Shown here: positions 6,471 through 18,201 of the stretch, in pieces
How the letters are laid out: each line of letters begins with the position of its first letter
Position numbering within the stretch: the stretch's first letter is position 1
Position numbers and translations under genes: made by a program
NCBI GenBank assembly: GCA_052426225.1
Contig: JBNJNM010000013.1
Location: forward strand, 992,001 to 1,056,000
Origin: Zancudomyces culisetae HAW-14-8
Lineage: Eukaryota; Fungi; Kickxellomycota
Reading direction: 5' to 3'
DNA length: 64,000 bases
The notes under the pieces: generated by a model
Databases searched by the model: none
What the model was told of the DNA's origin: nothing
Seen by the model: only the letters and a program-made list of their open reading frames with translations

Positions 6471-9400
6471 TTAAGTACTAGTGTCAGTTGTGGTATCAGT
6501 AGTAGTGTCAGTGGTGGTGTCAGTTGTGGTATCGGTTGTGGTATCGGTTGTGGTATCAGTGGTTGTATCAGTTGTGGTATCGGTTGTGGTATCGGTAGTA
6601 GTGTCAGTAGTAGTGTCAGTGGTTGTGTCAGTTGTGGTATCGGTTGTGGTATCAGTGGTTGTATCAGTTGTGGTATCGGTTGTGGTATCGGTAGTAGTGT
6701 CAGTAGTAGTGTCAGTGGTTGTGTCAGTTGTGGTATCAGTTGTGGTGTCAGTGGTTGTATCAGTTGTGGTATCAGTGGTTGTATCAGTGGTTGTATCAGT
6801 GGTTGTATCGGTTGTGGTATCGGTTGTGGTGTCAGTGGTTGTGTCAGTGGTTGTATCGGTTGTGGTGTCAGTGGTTGTATCAGTTGTGGTGTCAGTGGTT
6901 GTATCAGTTGTGGTATCGGTAGTAGTGTCAGTTGTGGTGTCAGTGGTGGTGTCAGTGGTTGTGTCAGTAGTAGTGTCAGTGGTTGTGTCAGTTGTGGTAT
7001 CGGTTGTGGTATCGGTTGTGGTGTCAGTTGTGGTATCGGTTGTGGTATCAGTGGTTGTGTCAGTTGTGGTATCAGTGGTTGTATCAGTTGTGGTATCAGT
7101 GGTTGTATCAGTTGTGGTGTCAGTGGTTGTGTCAGTTGTGGTATCAGTGGTTGTGTCAGTTGTGGTATCAGTGGTTGTATCAGTTGTGGTGTCAGTGGTT
7201 GTGGTATCGGTTGTGGTATCGGTTGTGGTATCGGTTGTGGTGTCAGTGGTTGTGTCAGTGGTTGTATCAGTGGTTGTATCAGTGGTTGTATCGGTTGTGG
7301 TGTCAGTTGTGGTATCAGTGGTTGTATCAGTTGTGGTGTCAGTGGTTGTGCCAGTTGTGGTGTCAGTTGTGGTATCGGTTGTGGTATCAGTGGTTGTGTC
7401 AGTTGTGGTGTCAGTGGTTGTATCAGTTGTGGTGTCAGTGGTTGTATCAGTTGTGGTGTCAGTGGTTGTATCAGTTGTGGTGTCAGTGGTTGTGTCAGTA
7501 GTAGTGTCAGTTGTGGTGTCAGTGGTGGTGTCAGTGGTTGTGTCAGTAGTAGTGTCAGTGGTTGTGTCAGTTGTGGTATCGGTTGTGGTATCGGTTGTGG
7601 TGTCAGTAGTAGTGTCAGTGGTTGTGTCAGTTGTGGTGTCAGTTGTGGTGTCAGTGGTTGTATCGGTTGTGGTATCAGTGGTGGTATCAGTTGTGGTATC
7701 AGTTGTGGTGTCAGTGGTTGTGTCAGTTGTGGTATCAGTGGTTGTGTCAGTGGTTGTATCGGTTGTGGTATCAGTGGTTGTATCAGTTGTGGTATCGGTT
7801 GTGGTATCGGTTGTGGTATCGGTTGTGGTGTCGGTTGTGGTATCGGTTGTGGTATCGGTTGTGGTGTCAGTGGTTGTATCAGTTGTGGTATCGGTTGTGG
7901 TATCGGTAGTAGTATCAGTTGTGGTGTCAGTGGTTGTGTCAGTTGTGGTATCAGTGGTTGTGTCAGTGGTTGTATCAGTTGTTGTATCAGTGGTTGTATC
8001 AGTGGTTGTATCGGTTGTGGTGTCAGTGGTTGTGTCAGTTGTGGTATCAGTGGTTGTGTCAGTGGTTGTATCAGTTGTTGTATCAGTTGTTGTATCAGTG
8101 GTTGTATCAGTGGTTGTATCGGTTGTGGTGTCAGTGGTTGTGTCAGTTGTGGTGTCAGTGGTTGTGTCAGTTGTGGTGTCAGTGGTTGTATCAGTTGTGG
8201 TGTCAGTGGTTGTATCAGTTGTGGTGTCAGTGGTTGTATCAGTTGTGGTATCGGTAGTAGTGTCAGTTGTGGTGTCAGTGGTGGTGTCAGTGGTTGTGTC
8301 AGTAGTAGTGTCAGTGGTTGTGTCAGTTGTGGTATCGGTTGTGGTATCGGTTGTGGTGTCAGTAGTAGTGTCAGTGGTTGTGTCAGTTGTGGTGTCAGTT
8401 GTGGTGTCAGTGGTTGTATCGGTTGTGGTATCAGTGGTGGTATCAGTTGTGGTATCAGTTGTGGTATCAGTTGTGGTGTCAGTGGTTGTGTCAGTTGTGG
8501 TATCAGTGGTTGTGTCAGTGGTTGTATCGGTTGTGGTATCAGTGGTTGTATCAGTTGTGGTATCGGTTGTGGTATCGGTTGTGGTGTCGGTTGTGGTGTC
8601 GGTTGTGGTATCGGTTGTGGTATCGGTTGTGGTGTCAGTGGTTGTATCAGTTGTGGTATCGGTTGTGGTATCGGTAGTAGTATCAGTTGTGGTGTCAGTG
8701 GTTGTGTCAGTTGTGGTATCAGTGGTTGTGTCAGTGGTTGTATCGGTTGTGGTATCAGTGGTTGTATCAGTTGTGGTATCAGTTGTGGTATCGGTTGTGG
8801 TGTCAGTTGTGGTGTCAGTTGTGGTATCGGTTGTGGTGTCAGTGGTTGTATCGGTTGTGGTATCAGTGGTGGTATCGGTAGTAGTGTCAGTTGTGGTATC
8901 GGTTGTGGTGTCAGTTGTGGTATCGGTTGTGGTATCGGTTGTGGTGTCAGTGGTTGTGTCAGTGGTTGTATCGGTTGTGGTGTCAGTTGTGGTATCGGTT
9001 GTGGTGTCAGTGGTTGTATCAGTTGTGGTATCAGTGGTTGTATCAGTGGTTGTATCAGTGGTTGTATCGGTTGTGGTATCGGTTGTGGTGTCAGTGGTTG
9101 TGTCAGTTGTGGTATCAGTTGTGGTGTCAGTTGTGGTATCGGTTGTGGTATCGGTTGTGGTGTCAGTGGTTGTATCAGTTGTGGTGTCAGTTGTGGTATC
9201 AGTTGTGGTGTCAGTTGTGGTATCGGTTGTGGTATCGGTTGTGGTGTCAGTGGTTGTGTCAGTAGTAGTGTCAGTGGTTGTGTCAGTTGTGGTATCAGTG
9301 GTTGTATCAGTGGTTGTGTCAGTGGTTGTGTCAGTTGTGGTGTCAGTTGTGGTATCGGTTGTGGTATCAGTGGTTGTGTCAGTTGTGGTATCAGTGGTTG

Positions 9401-12400
9401 TATCAGTGGTTGTGTCAGTGGTTGTATCAGTGGTGGTGTCAGTGGTTGTGTCAGTAGTAGTGTCAGTGGTTGTGTCAGTTGTGGTATCGGTTGTGGTGTC
9501 AGTGGTTGTGTCAGTAGTAGTGTCAGTGGTTGTATCAGTTGTTGTATCAGTGGTTGTATCAGTGGTTGTATCGGTTGTGGTGTCAGTGGTTGTGTCAGTT
9601 GTGGTATCGGTTGTGGTATCAGTGGTTGTGTCAGTTGTGGTATCAGTGGTTGTATCAGTGGTTGTATCAGTGGTTGTATCGGTTGTGGTATCGGTTGTGG
9701 TGTCAGTGGTTGTGTCAGTGGTTGTATCGGTTGTGGTGTCAGTTGTGGTATCGGTTGTGGTGTCAGTTGTGGTATCGGTTGTGGTATCGGTAGTAGTGTC
9801 AGTGGTTGTGTCAGTGGTTGTATCGGTTGTGGTATCGGTTGTGGTATCGGTTGTGGTGTCAGTGGTTGTGTCAGTGGTTGTATCAGTTGTGGTGTCAGTT
9901 GTGGTATCAGTTGTGGTGTCAGTTGTGGTATCGGTTGTGGTATCGGTTGTGGTGTCAGTGGTTGTGTCAGTAGTAGTGTCAGTGGTTGTGTCAGTTGTGG
10001 TATCAGTGGTTGTATCAGTGGTTGTGTCAGTGGTTGTGTCAGTTGTGGTGTCAGTTGTGGTATCGGTTGTGGTATCAGTGGTTGTGTCAGTTGTGGTATC
10101 AGTGGTTGTATCAGTGGTTGTGTCAGTGGTTGTATCAGTGGTTGTATCAGTGGTTGTATCGGTTGTGGTATCGGTTGTGGTGTCAGTGGTTGTGTCAGTG
10201 GTTGTATCGGTTGTGGTGTCAGTTGTGGTATCGGTTGTGGTGTCAGTTGTGGTATCGGTTGTGGTATCGGTAGTAGTGTCAGTGGTTGTGTCAGTGGTTG
10301 TATCGGTTGTGGTGTCAGTGGTTGTATCGGTTGTGGTGTCAGTGGTTGTATCAGTTGTGGTATCGGTTGTGGTGTCAGTGGTTGTATCGGTTGTGGTATC
10401 AGTGGTTGTATCAGTTGTGGTATCGGTTGTGGTATCGGTTGTGGTGTCAGTGGTTGTATCAGTTGTGGTATCAGTGGTTGTATCAGTGGTTGTATCAGTG
10501 GTTGTATCGGTTGTGGTATCGGTTGTGGTGTCAGTGGTTGTGTCAGTTGTGGTATCAGTTGTGGTGTCAGTTGTGGTATCAGTGGTTGTGTCAGTGGTTG
10601 TATCAGTTGTGGTGTCAGTTGTGGTATCAGTTGTGGTGTCAGTTGTGGTATCGGTTGTGGTATCGGTTGTGGTGTCAGTTGTGGTATCGGTTGTGGTATC
10701 GGTTGTGGTGTCAGTGGTTGTGTCAGTAGTAGTGTCAGTGGTTGTGTCAGTTGTGGTATCGGTTGTGGTGTCAGTGGTTGTGTCAGTAGTAGTGTCAGTG
10801 GTTGTGTCAGTTGTGGTATCAGTGGTTGTATCAGTGGTTGTGTCAGTGGTTGTATCAGTTGTGGTGTCAGTTGTGGTATCGGTTGTGGTATCAGTGGTTG
10901 TGTCAGTTGTGGTATCAGTGGTTGTATCAGTGGTTGTGTCAGTGGTTGTATCAGTGGTTGTATCAGTTGTGGTGTCAGTTGTGGTATCAGTGGTTGTGTC
11001 AGTTGTGGTATCGGTTGTGGTATCGGTTGTGGTATCGGTTGTGGTGTCAGTTGTGGTGTCAGTGGTTGTATCAGTTGTTGTATCAGTGGTTGTATCAGTG
11101 GTTGTATCGGTTGTGGTATCGGTTGTGGTGTCAGTTGTGGTATCGGTTGTGGTGTCAGTTGTGGTGTCAGTTGTGGTATCGGTTGTGGTATCGGTAGTAG
11201 TGTCAGTAGTAGTGTCAGTGGTTGTGGTATCGGTTGTGGTACCAGTTGTGGTGTCAGTTGTGGTATCGGTTGTGGTATCGGTTGTGGTGTCAGTGGTTGT
11301 ATCGGTTGTGGTATCAGTGGTGGTATCAGTTGTGGTATCAGTTGTGGTGTCAGTGGTTGTATCAGTTGTGGTATCAGTGGTTGTGTCAGTGGTTGTATCG
11401 GTTGTGGTATCAGTGGTTGTATCAGTTGTGGTATCGGTTGTGGTGTCAGTGGTTGTGTCAGTGGTTGTGTCAGTAGTAGTGTCAGTGGTTGTGTCAGTTG
11501 TGGTGTCAGTTGTGGTGTCAGTGGTTGTGTCAGTGGTTGTGTCAGTTGTGGTATCGGTAGTAGTGTCAGTGGTTGTATCGGTTGTGGTGTCAGTTGTGGT
11601 ATCAGTGGTTGTGTCAGTTGTGGTATCAGTGGTTGTATCAGTGGTTGTATCAGTTGTGGTGTCAGTTGTGGTATCAGTGGTTGTGTCAGTTGTGGTATCG
11701 GTTGTGGTGTCAGTTGTGGTATCGGTTGTGGTATCAGTGGTTGTATCAGTTTCCGTGGTTGTATCAGTTTCTGTGGTTATGTCAGTTTCTGTAGTAGTAT
11801 CAGTCTCAGTATCTGTTGTAGTATCTGTTTCTGTGGTGGTATCTGTTTCTGTATCAGTTGTGGTATCGGTTTCTGTGGTGGTGTCGGTTTCTGTAGTCGT
11901 ATCAGTCTCAGTTTCCGTGGTTGTATCAGTTTCTGTTGTAGTATCAGTTTCTGTTGTAGTATCAGTTTCTGTGGTGGTGTCGGTTTCTGTAGTAGTATCA
12001 GTCTCAGTTTCCGTGGTTGTATCTGTTTCTGTATCAGTTGTGGTATCGGTTTCTGTGGTGGTGTCGGTTTCTGTAGTCGTATCAGTCTCAGTTTCCGTGG
12101 TTGTATCAGTTTCTGTTGTAGTATCAGTTTCTGTGGTGGTGTCGGTTTCTGTAGTAGTATCAGTCTCAGTTTCCGTGGTTGTATCTGTTTCTGTGGTGGT
12201 ATCAGTTTCTGTATCTGTAGTTGTATCAGTTTCTGTAGTAGTATCAGTTTCTGTGGTGGTATCGGTTTCTGTATCAGTTGTGGTATCGGTTTCTGTGGTG
12301 GTGTCGGTTTCTGTAGTAGTATCAGTCTCAGTTTCCGTGGTTGTATCAGTTTCTGTTGTAGTATCAGTTTCTGTGGTGGTGTCGGTTTCTGTAGTAGTAT

Positions 12401-14289
12401 CAGTCTCAGTTTCCGTGGTTGTATCTGTTTCTGTATCAGTTGTGGTATCGGTTTCTGTGGTGGTGTCGGTTTCTGTAGTAGTATCAGTCTCAGTTTCCGT
12501 GGTTGTATCAGTTTCTGTGGTGGTATCAGTTTCTGTATCTGTAGTTGTATCAGTTTCTGTAGTAGTATCAGTTTCTGTGGTGGTGTCGGTTTCTGTATCT
12601 GTAGTTGTATCAGTTTCTGTTGTAGTATCAGTTTCTGTGGTTGTATCAGTCTCCGTGGTTGTATCAGTCTCCGTGGTTGTATCAGTTTCTGTGGTTGTAT
12701 CAGTTTCTGTGGTGGTATCGGTCTCAGTGCCGGTGGTGCTACCGGATTCTGTTGTTGTAACTGTAACAGTATCTGTAGTTGTATCTGTAACAGTTACAGT
12801 CACATTGTTTGTTTCTTCTAGCCATGGAATACCTTGTATGTTTTCCAGATCTAATTCATTTATTATCAACCCATCTATCTTTATTGTTGACTGTCCTGCA
12901 TCTACCACTTGTCTTTTGTGATTTTGAAATTCTACATTTCGCTTTTTTATATCTCTAGACCCATCGTTTGTTATTGGCTGTACTTCTGTATCCTGTGATT
13001 CATTTCCTATTCCAACCAAATTAGCTTGGCCTGTCTCAGTTTCTTCGCTTTCTGTGGTTGGGAAAAAATCAGTATCTTCGTCTCCTGTCTCGATAGGTAT
13101 ACTTACACTTTCAGAGTTTGTTGAGGAATCAGTTGAAGAATCAGTTGAAGAATCAGTTGAAGAATCAGTTGAAGACTCAGTTGAAGACTCAGTTGAGGAA
13201 TCAGTTGAGGAATCAGTTGAAGACTCGGTTGAAGAATCAGTTGAAGTGTCAGTTGAAGAATCAGTTGAAGAATCAGTTGAGGAATCAGTTGAAGTATCAG
13301 TTGAAGAATCAGTTGAAGACTCAGTTGAAGAATCAGTTGAAGAATCAGTTGAAGACTCAGTTGAAGACTCAGTTGAAGAATCAGTTGAAGACTCAGTTGA
13401 AGACTCAGTTGAAGACTCAGTTGAAGACTCAGTTGAGGAATCAGTTGAAGTATCAGTTGAAGAATCAGTTGAAGACTCAGTTGAAGAATCAGTTGAAGAA
13501 TCAGTTGAAGAATCAGTTGAAGAATCAGTTGAAGAATCAGTTGAAGACTCAGTTGAAGACTCAGTTGAAGACTCAGTTGAAGACTCAGTTGAGGAATCAG
13601 TTGAAGTATCAGTTGAAGAATCAGTTGAAGACTCAGTTGAAGAATCAGTTGAAGAATCAGTTGAAGAATCAGTTGAAGAATCAGTTGAAGAATCAGTTGA
13701 AGACTCAGTTGGGAAAATATCGGTACTTTCGTCTCCTGACTCAGTTGGTATGCTAATCTTATCTGAATCAGTTGAATTATCAGTTGAAGTATCAGTTGAA
13801 GAATCAGATGAGGAATCAGTTGAAGTATCAGTTGAAGAATCAGATGAAGTATCAGATGAAGTATCAGTTGAAGAATCAGTTGAAGAATCAGTTGAGGAAT
13901 CAGTTGAAGTATCACTTGAATTGTCTTTTGATGTTTCCCACCCGGGTATGCCATTTAGTTCATCTATCACCAGCTCATTTATTGATATTCCACCAATGCT
14001 GATAGTTGAGCTTCTATCTGATTCTTCCTGTTTTTTGAAAAATTTAACGTGGCCCGCTCTTTTTGTTGAAGTTTGCTTAAACTTATTATGCAAAAAGCCC
14101 ATTTCGCTTGCTTTCAGTTCAGTTATTACTTCCAGCATTTGGGCATTATATGCACCGTTTGAGCAGTCATAATATGGCTCTATTGATGATGATGAATACG
14201 ATGATGATGAATACGATGATGATGAATATGATGAATATGATGGTGATGATGAATATGATGGTGATGATGACGATGACGATGACGATGAC

Positions 14290-14345
<56 letters not shown>

Positions 14346-15541
14346 GTTAGTTTCAGAGACAAACTCGACGGTACCCACATCCAATCCCTTCATTTCCATT
14401 TTTCCAATGCTCACAACAAGATCTCTACGTGCATTATCCATCCTCTTTTCCATTTTTTCGTTTCTCTTCTCTATTTTTTTTGTATTATTTTTTGCACCTA
14501 GTTTTTCTAATATTGCCTTCATCAACATCTTTTTAAATTCGTCGCTTGAAGTGATAAATGAAGAAATAGCTTGTGTTGTATTGTTTGAATTACCTGAGCT
14601 ATCCTTCGCTTTAACGTCTCTCCTATTGAATCCCATTCGTTCCTGTAGCCTCAAAGAACTAAACCCACCAAATCTTTGTCGTTGTATCACCTCCTTTTCT
14701 GTATTTTTTGACGCCTCATCGTCTCCTTCGTCGTTTAATTCTTGTTTTCTGCATTTTTCTTTACACACCAACCCCCTCAGTGTACAAATACACAATGTGC
14801 AGTTGTCGTCCTTGTATATATACTTGGCACCATGCATTTTAATACAATTTCTATATCTGTAGTAAGGATTGTTCCTTAGTGGTCTATTTAGACACTTTCT
14901 TCCGCTGTAAGTACAGTAACACGCTTTTTTTGTCGCAGGGTCAATATCTAGCACTATTCCGTGTAATTTTACACAATCGTGATATTTTTTCCAATTTTCA
15001 TTTTCCATATCCATATCAAAGCTAGTGTCTGCTCTTTTACTACACTCGTCTCCGAGTGGGCAGTTTTCGCCATAAATATCACAGTAGCATTTCGTGCATT
15101 TTTCGTTGCTGTAGTATAACCCATATCCATATTTATTTACACATTGTAGATATGCGTCTTTTCCTTTCCATTGACCTCTTATTGGAACTTTTGTATCTAT
15201 ATGTTATTTTTATTTGTCATCAGTATTACCAACTTGTATTTTTTTTTGGTTATTTTTAAATGAAATATATGGTCAATATTTGACAATGCTCAACCAATGT
15301 TCTGAGGAGCTACTCTTTATGCTGATGTTAATTTAGCATCTCCGTTTTATCTTTACAGATACTACTCCTCTGTTTGGCATACTTATGGTATACACTAAAA
15401 CGTGCTTTATTATTTACCTTTGACAAAATCCGGGGTTTCAGAACCAGTGTTGGAATCATGCCCTTCCTCAATTACCCAGGAGTTTCCTGAGTTGGGGATG
15501 ACCGCTGCAGCATACAATAGATGAAAGTAGCTGATCCTCAT
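6471..15541 (-). CDS. Giant secreted Cys-knot plus Ser/Thr/Asp-repeat (mucin/adhesin-like) polyprotein, ~2949 aa; exon 1 15541-15418, intron 15417-15197, exon 2 15196-6471
   Basis: Exon 1 reads MRISYFHLLYAAAVIPNSGNSWVIEE... (signal-peptide-like). The GTAAAT donor and ATAG acceptor join in frame (G|AT=Asp) to the 2847-aa ORF. Variation within the repeats is almost entirely synonymous. Confidence 0.8.
6474..11748 (-). repeat. Coding tandem array of 12-bp units encoding (TTTD)n, ~440 units
   Basis: Directly visible: GAY ACH ACH ACH units, with only two TTTG variants and two single-Thr insertions seen. Confidence 0.95.
11749..12725 (-). repeat. Coding tandem array of 18/24-bp units encoding TETDTT / TETETDTT / TDTETDTT
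   Basis: Directly visible in sequence and translation. Confidence 0.9.
13123..13920 (-). repeat. Coding tandem array of 12-bp units encoding DSST/ESST/DTST
   Basis: TCAGTTGAAGAA-type units on the + strand; translation (DSST)n(ESST)n. Confidence 0.9.
14183..14346 (-). repeat. (TCA/TCG)n trinucleotide tract encoding poly-Ser punctuated by Tyr/Pro
   Basis: GAT/GAC run on the + strand; translation is a long Ser run followed by PSYSSSPSYSSYSSSSYSSSSYSSSS. Confidence 0.9.
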
Positions 15542-18201
15542 GTTTATTTTACACTTGTACTATTTAATGCTACAAGTAAAATTTGTATATTTAATTGATA
15601 TATTTCTCAATAAAAAATACTTGTGTTCGGGTCGGTTGCAAGTTGGTTTTTTAAGGGTATTCTGTATTGGTTTTATTTATTTATACGCCAAACATTTACT
15701 ATCATAAAACGACACCTTTTTTTCTCTATAAAATATGTTCTACTAGGCTAATATGTACTTTCAATAACTAATCCCTTTTATTGAGTACCATGTTGTTTCA
15801 CAAGGAAAAAAAAGTTCAAATATGAATGGGTTCCAATTTTGTTTTTTGTAATATAATAGCAACAACAATTATACAGTATTATCCAATTTTGTACATATCC
15901 ACTTTTGCTTGTAAACACTAACTAAACTCAAAGCCATTATAAAGATATGTAAAGCGAAAAAAAATGCAGTCGAAATTCATGATGATTATTGTTACAAATA
16001 TTTCCCAAATGAAGTACAACTGTGCTGCTAAATGGATTACAAACCACCCTTTCTGTTTCTGTGGTAGATTATTAGTATTTACTTGCCGAAAAATGAAGTA
16101 AGGATATATTCATTTTTGCAAACATTCCATCGCATAGACAATGGTAATAATATTGATGCTTTCACAGTATCATCAGATTAGGTACATTACCCAGCACAAA
16201 TATTTTATATATCCGAGTATGCTTTATCTCCGTTCCTAACACAGGTTCTGTACTTTTCAAAATAGTTGCCATATTAAATCCAAAAAACCCTAAACATACT
16301 TCGGGCAACTGGCTTTTTGTATTTGCACGAAGGACTAAATTCTATTAACATAGACACTGTGAATAATTACATTGTCTAGCTTTCCTATGGGTATTTCTTA
16401 AATATATTATTTTCAGCCATAGACTCCCTTTCAACGTTATACATATAAAGAATAAAATTCTAAAGGTCCCATATTCAACAAAGTAACTTGGTTTACGTGA
16501 ATATTTATTTTTTTAATTAAAGATTGTTCATGAAAATATTGGGTTTTCCAACCATACCGCACATCCCAGATCCCAGTACAGATATATATCATATAACTAA
16601 TTTCAGTCATTTAGTAAAGTTCCCTTGCTCTTAACACCATCCTGGGTCTTCAGATGATTTTTCAATATATTATTTTGGTCTCGTCATTTAGCAAAACTTA
16701 GATAAAAAAGAAATTAGAAAGTCAGTCGCAATTAAAGTTATTCGCTAAATTCTGTATATCAATTGTAAAAAAACAAATACACTAGCTCCAATATTTGTGA
16801 AAAAAAAAATTCGCCCTTGCGATATAAAATAAGCATGGTCATTTAATGCAAAGTATACTAATGAATCCGTATACCAATATAGCTGAAGGCAATAACAATA
16901 CTTACTCTCCGATAGCCTAACTTCTTTCAACCTCAGAATGTTGAACATGTGTTCAGTTTGTGTAGGTCGCGTGAGTACAAGCTTTACTCTATTTTTTGAT
17001 TTATCAATAACAACTAAGCTTTGTTTGGAGTTTACTCACCTTTTTTCAATTCATCAGTGTTTAGAAAAAGGTTTTTTTTCTTATTTCTACTTTTCCATCC
17101 TAAAAAGACAAATTTCGACTCACTCTTGCTGATACTTTCATATTTTTCGAGCTTTTTCGTCTATTAAAAGTAGGATTCTCGCAATAAGATTTAAGCGAAC
17201 ACAGATAGTGCAATTTACATTCATCAAAAATATCACTTTTTACTTAAATGACATTGTCAACTAATTAACACCTTTGTCTTTGTTATTTCAACTTTATAAG
17301 CTAAACATGCTTTTCTTGTAAAAAATCAGCACTTAGAATCAGCACCACTAATACGGTTACCAGTATTTCGCTACTAAGTCCATCACGTTATCAGATTGGG
17401 AAATAATATCGAAAATGTGTATATACATTTGAAAAGATATGACAATGAAAAAGCAAAATACAATGTAAATACCCAGCTACTGGTGCTCAAAGCTTCCGTA
17501 CATGCCATACTGGCAAATAACTTTAAGCTCAGAGATTACCAAGTAGTTTTGAACGAGTATAGTAAGTCAGTATAGCAAACTGTCTTTTAACATTCCTCCA
17601 AAAGATAAATATTCACTTCAGATAAAAAATACACACAGATAGTAGAGTTTAGTTGTATAAAGCAGCATATATTATATTCAGAAACGATTAAAGCAAATAA
17701 TGTCGGCCGAATCCGCTATATCTATTACAGTGTACCGATAGGAAAAATACAACCCACTAGCTTCCCACAACTTTGTGTGAGTTTTAGCCATATACTTGCT
17801 ACTTTTGAGCATAGGCGTGTGACTCTATTCGGACATGTGATTTGATTTGGCTTAGTGAGGCCTGCGTCTAGCCAAGTTAATGCTAAGCCTTACAACAAGG
17901 ATCCCATTTTCCCATTAGGCTTTTGGCAAACGAGTATATTGTCATGGGCCAATAATGTACAAGGAAATTTCCGTAAGCTTTTTTTTTCCCGAGAATTTGC
18001 ATTACACCACACAATTCGGTTTACTATTTTTTCATAAAGGTGCAAAAGAAAATCCCTAGAGTAAAAACTATAGGGAAAATTAGAAAAACAAAGAATTTGA
18101 ATTCTCATCTAAAGTAAACACGAAAAGCCATTTTATCCACTCTAAGATATACTACTTTGGCTGTCTTTGTCTTTTCAAATATTTTGTGTTGATCATCACA
18201 G

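Follow-up and report, generated by a model that had tools for sequence, protein, structure and literature searches.

A giant Thr/Asp-rich repeat protein with a pacifastin-like head, probably secreted, in the gut fungus Zancudomyces culisetae

Here we present the analysis of a large gene from the mosquito-gut fungus Zancudomyces culisetae HAW-14-8, located in a stretch of 64,000 nucleotides (nt) of contig JBNJNM010000013.1 (assembly GCA_052426225.1, positions 992,001 to 1,056,000; hereafter the window). The gene lies between window positions 6471 and 15541 on the minus strand, and coordinates given without a sign or a locus name refer to that strand of the window. As judged from its sequence, and with a probability of about 60 %, its product is a secreted, non-anchored and strongly polyanionic mucin-like glycoprotein carrying a pacifastin-like head. 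The most defensible statement on its role, which draws on analogy, is that the protein would serve as an extracellular coat, matrix or adhesive. It is an extreme case within a family that had not been described before, is built on known principles and has so far been seen only in Z. culisetae; the family is a species-specific expansion of a pacifastin-like unit fused to low-complexity repeats. The original prediction for this DNA had described a secreted polyprotein that is cut at dibasic sites into small disulfide peptides and three acidic polymers, possibly in a gut fungus of the order Harpellales. The fungus, Z. culisetae, does belong to the Harpellales, and much of the described layout is found in the gene, while the proposed processing is rather unlikely to occur in full.

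The gene model consists of two exons on the minus strand, 15541-15418 and 15196-6471, which together encode a protein of 2,949 residues. Exon 2 (6471..15196) is a frame of 2,910 open codons that runs from 15196 down to a TAA stop at 6471-6473. This frame offers no ATG ahead of its first Cys unit and is bounded directly upstream by an in-frame stop, so that a further exon is needed upstream. An ATG at 15541 starts such an exon (exon 1, 15418..15541, 124 nt or 41 codons plus 1 nt), which is followed by a GTAAAT donor at 15417 and joined in phase to the main frame through an ATATAG acceptor at 15197. The intervening intron (15197..15417) is 221 nt long with GT..AG ends, contains 29 % GC and a branch-like TACTGAT motif some 30 nt ahead of the AG, and reading through it hits stops immediately. 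The exon 1 peptide is signal-peptide-like over residues 1 to ~20, with MR followed by a hydrophobic core and then PNSG. Its best 10-residue Kyte-Doolittle mean is 2.0, with the paralogs giving 1.6-2.8 at their N-termini, and the peptide is similar to the starts of paralogs L009 and L013. We infer from these features both the splice joining the exons and the signal peptide, in line with the unannotated first exon of the original prediction; the protein is very probably secreted, as had been claimed. The joined model served for residue numbering and composition counts only, with searches and folds taking exon 2 or parts of it. A TATAAATA motif is located at 15678-15685 on the minus strand, about 140 nt 5' of the proposed start codon. 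An open reading frame (ORF) of 2,146 codons on the plus strand, 6481-12921 (+), was rejected as a gene, being the antisense reading of the Thr/Asp repeats.

The predicted protein is dominated by few amino acids, with 56 % Thr, 20 % Asp and 7 % Ser among its 2,949 residues and 703 acidic residues against 74 basic ones. Downstream of the signal-like start and three Cys-rich units lies a K/R/E-rich linker (14424..14735, residues 196-299) with the four [KR]R sites NRR, EKR, EKR and ARR. Module 1 (14205..14423, residues 300-372) follows as a head-like stretch continuing into poly-Ser/Tyr, and is separated from the next module by a non-repeat island (14058..14204, residues 373-421) that contains a lone Cys386 and ends with TKR. 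The head of module 2 (13911..14057, residues 422-470) leads into a polymer of about 66 (D/E)SST repeats with one internal spacer (13086..13910, residues 471-745). A second island (12912..13085, residues 746-803) carries the KKR and HKR sites and precedes the head of module 3 (12771..12911, residues 804-850), which continues into TETDTT-type repeats (11748..12770, residues 851-1191) and finally into an array of about 440 copies of DTTT (6474..11747, residues 1192-2949). The three unlike polymers, poly-S/Y, DSST/ESST and TETDTT/TTTD, are thus present as first described. The protein ends in the DTTT array with no hydrophobic or glycosylphosphatidylinositol (GPI)-like C-terminus, and no plausible hidden GPI-signal exon was found downstream of the stop in any frame.

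The DTTT array spans 1,758 codons with only about 5 residues other than D or T. Its Thr codons are distributed over ACC (532), ACA (406) and ACT (380), with ACG never used, its Asp codons over GAT (241) and GAC (196), and 40 distinct variants of the 12-nt unit are found. Third codon positions are therefore mixed while the amino acids are nearly invariant, which argues for maintenance of the array at the protein level and against a plain DNA microsatellite. In five neighbouring ORFs ACA is preferred and ACG occurs, unlike in the ACC-rich and ACG-free array. The extreme size and purity of the array, the lack of an anchor and the failure to find a near-identical protein for this gene in protein libraries would also suit a gene that does not work, either a family member in decay whose repeat has undergone a runaway, microsatellite-like expansion, or an artefact of assembly. 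We regard either as very improbable, given that the 8.7-kb frame is intact, that the 40 unit variants leave the amino acids nearly unchanged despite their mixed third positions, and that the head has retained its 16 Cys and its Gly positions. The array is 5.3 kb long and usual HiFi reads are longer. The PacBio-HiFi assembly of Z. culisetae HAW-14-8 has a coverage of 48x (PMC12611240).

The 16 Cys of the head lie within residues 60-190 and are divided over three units as 6+4+6, in agreement with the three Cys-rich knots noticed originally. Unit 1 (15030..15167) has six Cys and a 5-residue C5-C6 loop, PLGDE; unit 2 (14862..14999) has four, with C2 and C6 both absent, likewise in all nine paralogs; unit 3 (14733..14870) again has six and matches the units of a Pfam-positive paralog with an hhalign probability of 98.2 %. 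That paralog, L016, carries five units and clears the Pfam Pacifastin_I cut-off of 27.9 bits with a score of 50.9. A profile of 27 triple-module units compared with the profile of the L016/L015 units gives an hhalign probability of 98.2 % with an E of 3e-14 over 42 columns. By transitive homology via L016, the Cys units of the gene appear to be pacifastin-like, which does not make them demonstrated protease inhibitors. The criterion for Cys connectivity was the pacifastin pattern C1-C4, C2-C6, C3-C5. Pacifastin-like domains have a C2-C6 disulfide and a reactive loop between C5 and C6 (PMC13388995), and the loss of C2 and C6 together from unit 2 in all nine paralogs fits this bridge. The loops themselves depart from the canonical reactive loop C5-X-P1-P1'-X-C6, with 5 residues in unit 1, none in unit 2 and 3 in unit 3. 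The five units of L016 (L016:1122-2243 (+), equal to C11:3091121-3092242) are separated by Ser/Thr linkers, and in two of them the reactive loop follows the canonical C-T-L-x-x-C pattern, which places Leu at P1.

Fainter signals point in the same direction. A profile search of the PDB, headed by pacifastin or VWC entries, returned twelve pacifastin inhibitors and mucin VWC modules at E values of 0.07-1, the pacifastins at a marginal 0.12-1. Weak matches from an Atlas feature search put the pacifastin cluster first (0.76), and similarly weak ones from an Atlas shape search put the pacifastin and VWC2L clusters first (TM about 0.46-0.5). The AF2 model of a single unit forms a helix and three strands with a predicted local distance difference test score (pLDDT) of 82, and models of the head have pLDDT of 70-82. 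A Pfam scan of the head and both islands gave no match.

The gene does not stand alone in its genome. Searching the genome with the head gave 25 matches and reached about a dozen other loci, and searching with a single-unit profile gave 49 unit matches at about 19 loci (L002-L018 and L024-L027, for example C11:3091086-3092243, C6:1171700-1175050 and C11:2653300-2661400). At almost all of these loci the unit is joined to low-complexity repeats. The paralogs examined encode a signal peptide in the same frame, the 6+4+6 triple and then Ser/Thr-rich or other low-complexity repeats, in proteins of 264 to 2,715 residues. The triple is a conserved module in nine paralogs, with the 16 Cys and the Gly positions preserved. 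At further loci, one to five units are found next to repeats rich in Gly/Ser, Pro, Asp/Asn or Thr/Asp/Tyr. Low-complexity partners of the family units include TVTET, LTITSTLTD, TDPGTGGG, NEDVQD, GSGS, PGPAP and TDTYPTDEYP. Several repeat types are stacked in the paralogs, and stacking is thus usual in this family. Repeat number changes fast, as shown by two recent duplicate pairs that have near-identical heads and unlike repeat lengths: L010 (C6:1171000-1176500) and L012 (C6:1200000-1207500), of 1,117 and 1,692 residues, and L008 (C6:1858027-1861167) and L013 (C10:1164800-1168800), of 600 and 648 residues.

Beyond this genome, the head was compared exhaustively by phmmer with 1.84 billion representatives, which gave 4 matches, 3 of them Z. 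culisetae paralogs from an older assembly. The fourth, and the only relative from outside Z. culisetae that came to light, is a secreted protein of 109 residues on a Logan contig of run SRR29834385 (L019:562-891); it has two units and shares the Y-x-x-C-[VL]-K-x-H-G helix motif of the family. Word-indexed protein searches with the L016 ORF, the P0002 head region and P0004 returned only the queries, a weak blank in view of length and word limits, with the L016 ORF search probably swamped by low-complexity words. The protein P0001, located in GCA_001969505.1 / LSSK01 of Z. culisetae, is about 99 % identical to paralog L002. Family members are annotated only as hypothetical proteins, one of them as 'hypothetical protein AX774_g773 [Zancudomyces culisetae]'.

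The paralogs also bear on the claim that the product is something other than an ordinary adhesin, a claim that finds no support in the comparison. The paralogs have the layout of head and Ser/Thr-rich repeats in common, and L002, L003 and L014 close with a hydrophobic tail resembling a GPI signal, which gives the family the look of fungal mucin- or adhesin-type surface proteins. Of the hallmarks of a GPI-anchored adhesin, the protein studied here has the folded N-terminal domain followed by a Ser/Thr-rich stalk and, like the remaining paralogs, lacks the C-terminal hydrophobic GPI signal.

The machinery expected to modify such a protein is encoded in the genome. Most filamentous fungi have three loci for protein O-mannosyltransferases (PMT). 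Eight PMT loci above the cut-off were found in Z. culisetae, four on C21, two on C11 and one each on C15 and C8, and O-mannosylation is therefore the expected fate of the Ser/Thr tracts. The earlier expectation that these tracts are O-glycosylated is plausible on this count. A Fam20C-type kinase (PF06702) gave no match in the genome, which is weak evidence as control genomes are silent too; a phosphoserine cement is mildly disfavoured.

Taken together, these observations suggest the following course. The signal peptide would route the protein into the secretory pathway, where the head is modelled to fold as three small helix-plus-beta-sheet units (pLDDT 70-82) and about 1,850 Ser/Thr residues would be O-mannosylated by the fungal PMT enzymes. 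With Asp or Glu at every third or fourth residue, the product may form a stiff, hydrated, protease-resistant anionic rod of several hundred nanometres. Because it has no GPI signal, the product would be released or held non-covalently, and could act as an extracellular coat, matrix or adhesive with a binding or inhibitory head. Glue of the holdfast or of the trichospore appendage would be a candidate role.

Several points weigh against this reading of a secreted mucin-like glycoprotein with a pacifastin-like head. The head and its single units score below the gathering threshold of Pfam Pacifastin_I (PF05375), and Foldseek and VIA-align searches with the triple-module and single-unit models returned nothing significant; in a non-significant structure search the pacifastin inhibitor SGCI (PDB 1kgm) ranked 25 with a root-mean-square deviation of 2.1 A over 25 columns. 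The exon structure and the signal peptide are predictions from the sequence, and glycosylation is predicted from the composition. The missing anchor could also reflect another mode of wall linkage. Moreover, the family has no characterised member, and the function therefore rests on analogy.

Whether the protein is further processed depends on its dibasic sites. All eight sites listed originally, SKR/A, NRR/D, EKR/N, EKR/M, ARR/D, TKR/A, KKR/N and HKR/Q, are present, and a dibasic site precedes every polymer block. The non-repeat parts contain 8 [KR]R sites against 3.7 expected from shuffles (P 0.019) and 6 KR sites against 2.5 (P 0.029), while the K/R/E-rich linker by itself shows no significant enrichment of [KR]R (P 0.10). 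Between the heads of modules 2 and 3 there is a clear relationship, with 17/43 identical residues (E 3e-7) and a KR aligned 17 residues upstream in both, and the second site of module 3, HKR, is aligned with KK in module 2. The head of module 1 has no significant similarity to either (E 0.15-0.17). Of the three modules claimed to start with related heads after dibasic sites, each does have its preceding site, and a relationship could be demonstrated for the second and third heads only. A search for the head motif in the rest of the genome gave no match apart from the gene's own modules 2 and 3; a look-alike noticed by eye in L008/L013 gave no score.

Among the paralogs, a KR lies 12-20 residues past the last Cys of the head in L009, L011, L013/L008 and L014, and is the sole [KR]R of the whole protein in L011 (2,715 residues) and L013. 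This amounts to 4 of 8 paralog lineages against 1.8 expected (P(>=4) 0.06). A further KR, soon after the signal peptide, is seen in L002, L003 and L009. The long paralogs have no dibasic site between repeat blocks or in their stalks; internal sites between polymer blocks are found only in the gene studied here. Both the enrichment of dibasic sites and their conservation are marginal (P 0.02 and 0.06). SKR/A, between units 1 and 2, is conserved in no paralog, and no dibasic site lies between units 2 and 3; separate knot peptides are therefore unlikely, and the small disulfide peptides of the original prediction give way to a 6+4+6 triple that behaves as one module in nine paralogs.

These data can be weighed against the full polyprotein scheme, in which kexin would cut most of the eight dibasic sites to free disulfide peptides and three polyanionic polymers in a fixed ratio as glue of the holdfast or trichospore appendage. 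The genome encodes one kexin (an S8 subtilase with a P domain, on C15), and the excess of [KR]R sites, the site ahead of each polymer block, the KR kept at an aligned position before heads 2 and 3 although these are just 40 % identical, and the KR after the head in 4 of 8 lineages, where it is the sole [KR]R of L011 and L013, are all consistent with processing. Precedents exist in the dibasic sites between the domains of arthropod pacifastin precursors (PMC13388995) and in S. cerevisiae Flo11, which is shed after a Kex2-dependent cut close to its N-terminus (PMC8617999). Spores of Harpellales are reported to release a glue upon a pH shift (PMC5954228). However, the test at the family level is marginal (1.8 lineages expected, P 0.06), K and R being concentrated in such linkers anyway, and the linker alone shows no enrichment (P 0.10). 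Furthermore, the units are not separated by conserved sites, head 1 has no demonstrable kinship to heads 2 and 3, in the long paralogs several types of repeat follow one another with no dibasic site between them, and the gene falls outside the definition of Kex2-processed repeat proteins (PMC6339444). We thus consider the full polyprotein scheme rather unlikely: the site enrichment (P 0.019) and the kexin gene speak for it, the family test (P 0.06) and the single-module knots against it. A cut at some point of the linker that follows the head has a somewhat better chance than full polyprotein processing. For the secreted mucin-like glycoprotein favoured here, cuts by kexin in the K/R-rich linker and at the KR conserved ahead of each of modules 2 and 3 would be optional and are not required; if they take place, they would parallel the way in which arthropod pacifastin precursors are processed at dibasic sites and Flo11 is shed with the help of Kex2.

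A pacifastin-like head also raises the possibility of a shield against proteases, in which the head would inhibit trypsins and chymotrypsins of the host gut and the glycosylated acidic polymer would act as a carrier or as a protease-resistant coat. The fungus is attached in the larval hindgut (PMC12611240), the homology chain leads to Pacifastin_I via L016, and pacifastin domains carry their reactive loop between C5 and C6 (PMC13388995). Across the nine paralogs, position 2 of the unit 1 C5-C6 loop is occupied by L, L, K, M, R, R, I, R and R, all typical P1 residues, though this column was chosen after viewing the alignment. Set against these points, the loops have 5 residues in unit 1 and 3 in unit 3 of the protein in place of the canonical 4, unit 3 of the paralogs has T, A, D, N or Y at P1, and the modelled units appear to have an extra N-terminal helix that is absent from solved inhibitors. 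We know of no inhibition data for any fungal pacifastin-like domain. Overall we hold such a shield to be unlikely; it would be compatible with the other readings. In the window, the C5-C6 loop of unit 1 lies at about 15045-15065 on the minus strand, and the column in question resembles the variable P1 of a serine-protease inhibitor.

Extending both ideas, the family of about 19 genes might be an adaptation to the protease-rich gut of the insect, in which kexin-processed precursors free a pacifastin-type inhibitor head from O-mannosylated polyanionic polymers that form the glue of holdfast or spore, the unit being derived from, or convergent on, the inhibitors of the arthropod host. This is speculative and we rate its chances as slim, but if true, one precursor would supply host-protease inhibition and an adhesive matrix together.

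A secreted mucin-like glycoprotein with a pacifastin-like head, as favoured here, would be of interest in two respects. Comparative genomics had put forward a fasciclin protein as a candidate for adhesion in Harpellales (PMC5954228). The family offers concrete and testable secreted candidates for the attachment of these fungi to the insect hindgut cuticle and for their survival there, a candidate set that has become visible only since the long-read assembly. In addition, pacifastin-like domains were reported in 2026 from fungi, often inside matrix-type multidomain proteins, and it was recently proposed that they were at first modules embedded in a matrix, from which proteolytic processing released them later (PMC13388995); in the accessible part of the supplements to that report, no Zancudomyces entry was found. 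The present family provides a fungal case of pacifastin-like domains on mucin-like polymers beside dibasic sites and thus bears on the proposal of a matrix origin (PMC13388995). Should the protein be merely another Ser/Thr-rich wall protein, the result would be an ordinary one.

The gene can be placed among known systems by what it shares with each. Kex2-processed repeat proteins such as alpha-factor and Ustilago Rep1 contain at least 3 near-identical short peptides, clustered and each flanked by KR, RR or KK sites (PMC6339444). The gene studied here resembles them in encoding a putative secreted precursor with KR/RR before repeated elements and in having a kexin gene in its genome, but its three modules are unlike one another, measure about 120, 380 and 2,150 residues and have only two related heads. 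Closer in layout are the mucin-like adhesins and flocculins (Flo11/Muc1, Als, Epa), which likewise combine a signal peptide, a folded N-terminal head and Ser/Thr-rich tandem repeats of a length that varies among paralogs. The Z. culisetae protein differs from them in lacking a GPI signal, in carrying a pacifastin-like triple instead of a Flo11, PA14 or Ig-like head, and in repeats that are strongly acidic (20 % Asp), far purer and longer; there is no sequence similarity. The Thr-rich, O-glycosylated glue mucins (Sgs) of Drosophila and the Sdr/Clf stalks of staphylococci also consist of short hydroxyl-rich or hydroxyl-plus-acid repeats that are glycosylated and flanked by Cys-rich or folded ends; the former act as glue and the SD repeats of the latter as protease-resistant stalks, an analogy with the present protein that is functional only, as neither sequence nor organism is related. 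From the pacifastin family (PF05375, MEROPS I19) the head differs in its sub-threshold units, a longer C1-C2 loop, the extra N-terminal helix of the models, C5-C6 loops of 5 and 3 residues against the canonical 4, and the fusion to giant Thr/Asp repeats. It shares with this family the six-Cys pattern with CxxCxC in units 1 and 3, the paired loss of C2 and C6 in unit 2, a paralog (L016) above the Pfam cut-off and dibasic sites after the domains, as in the arthropod precursors (PMC13388995).

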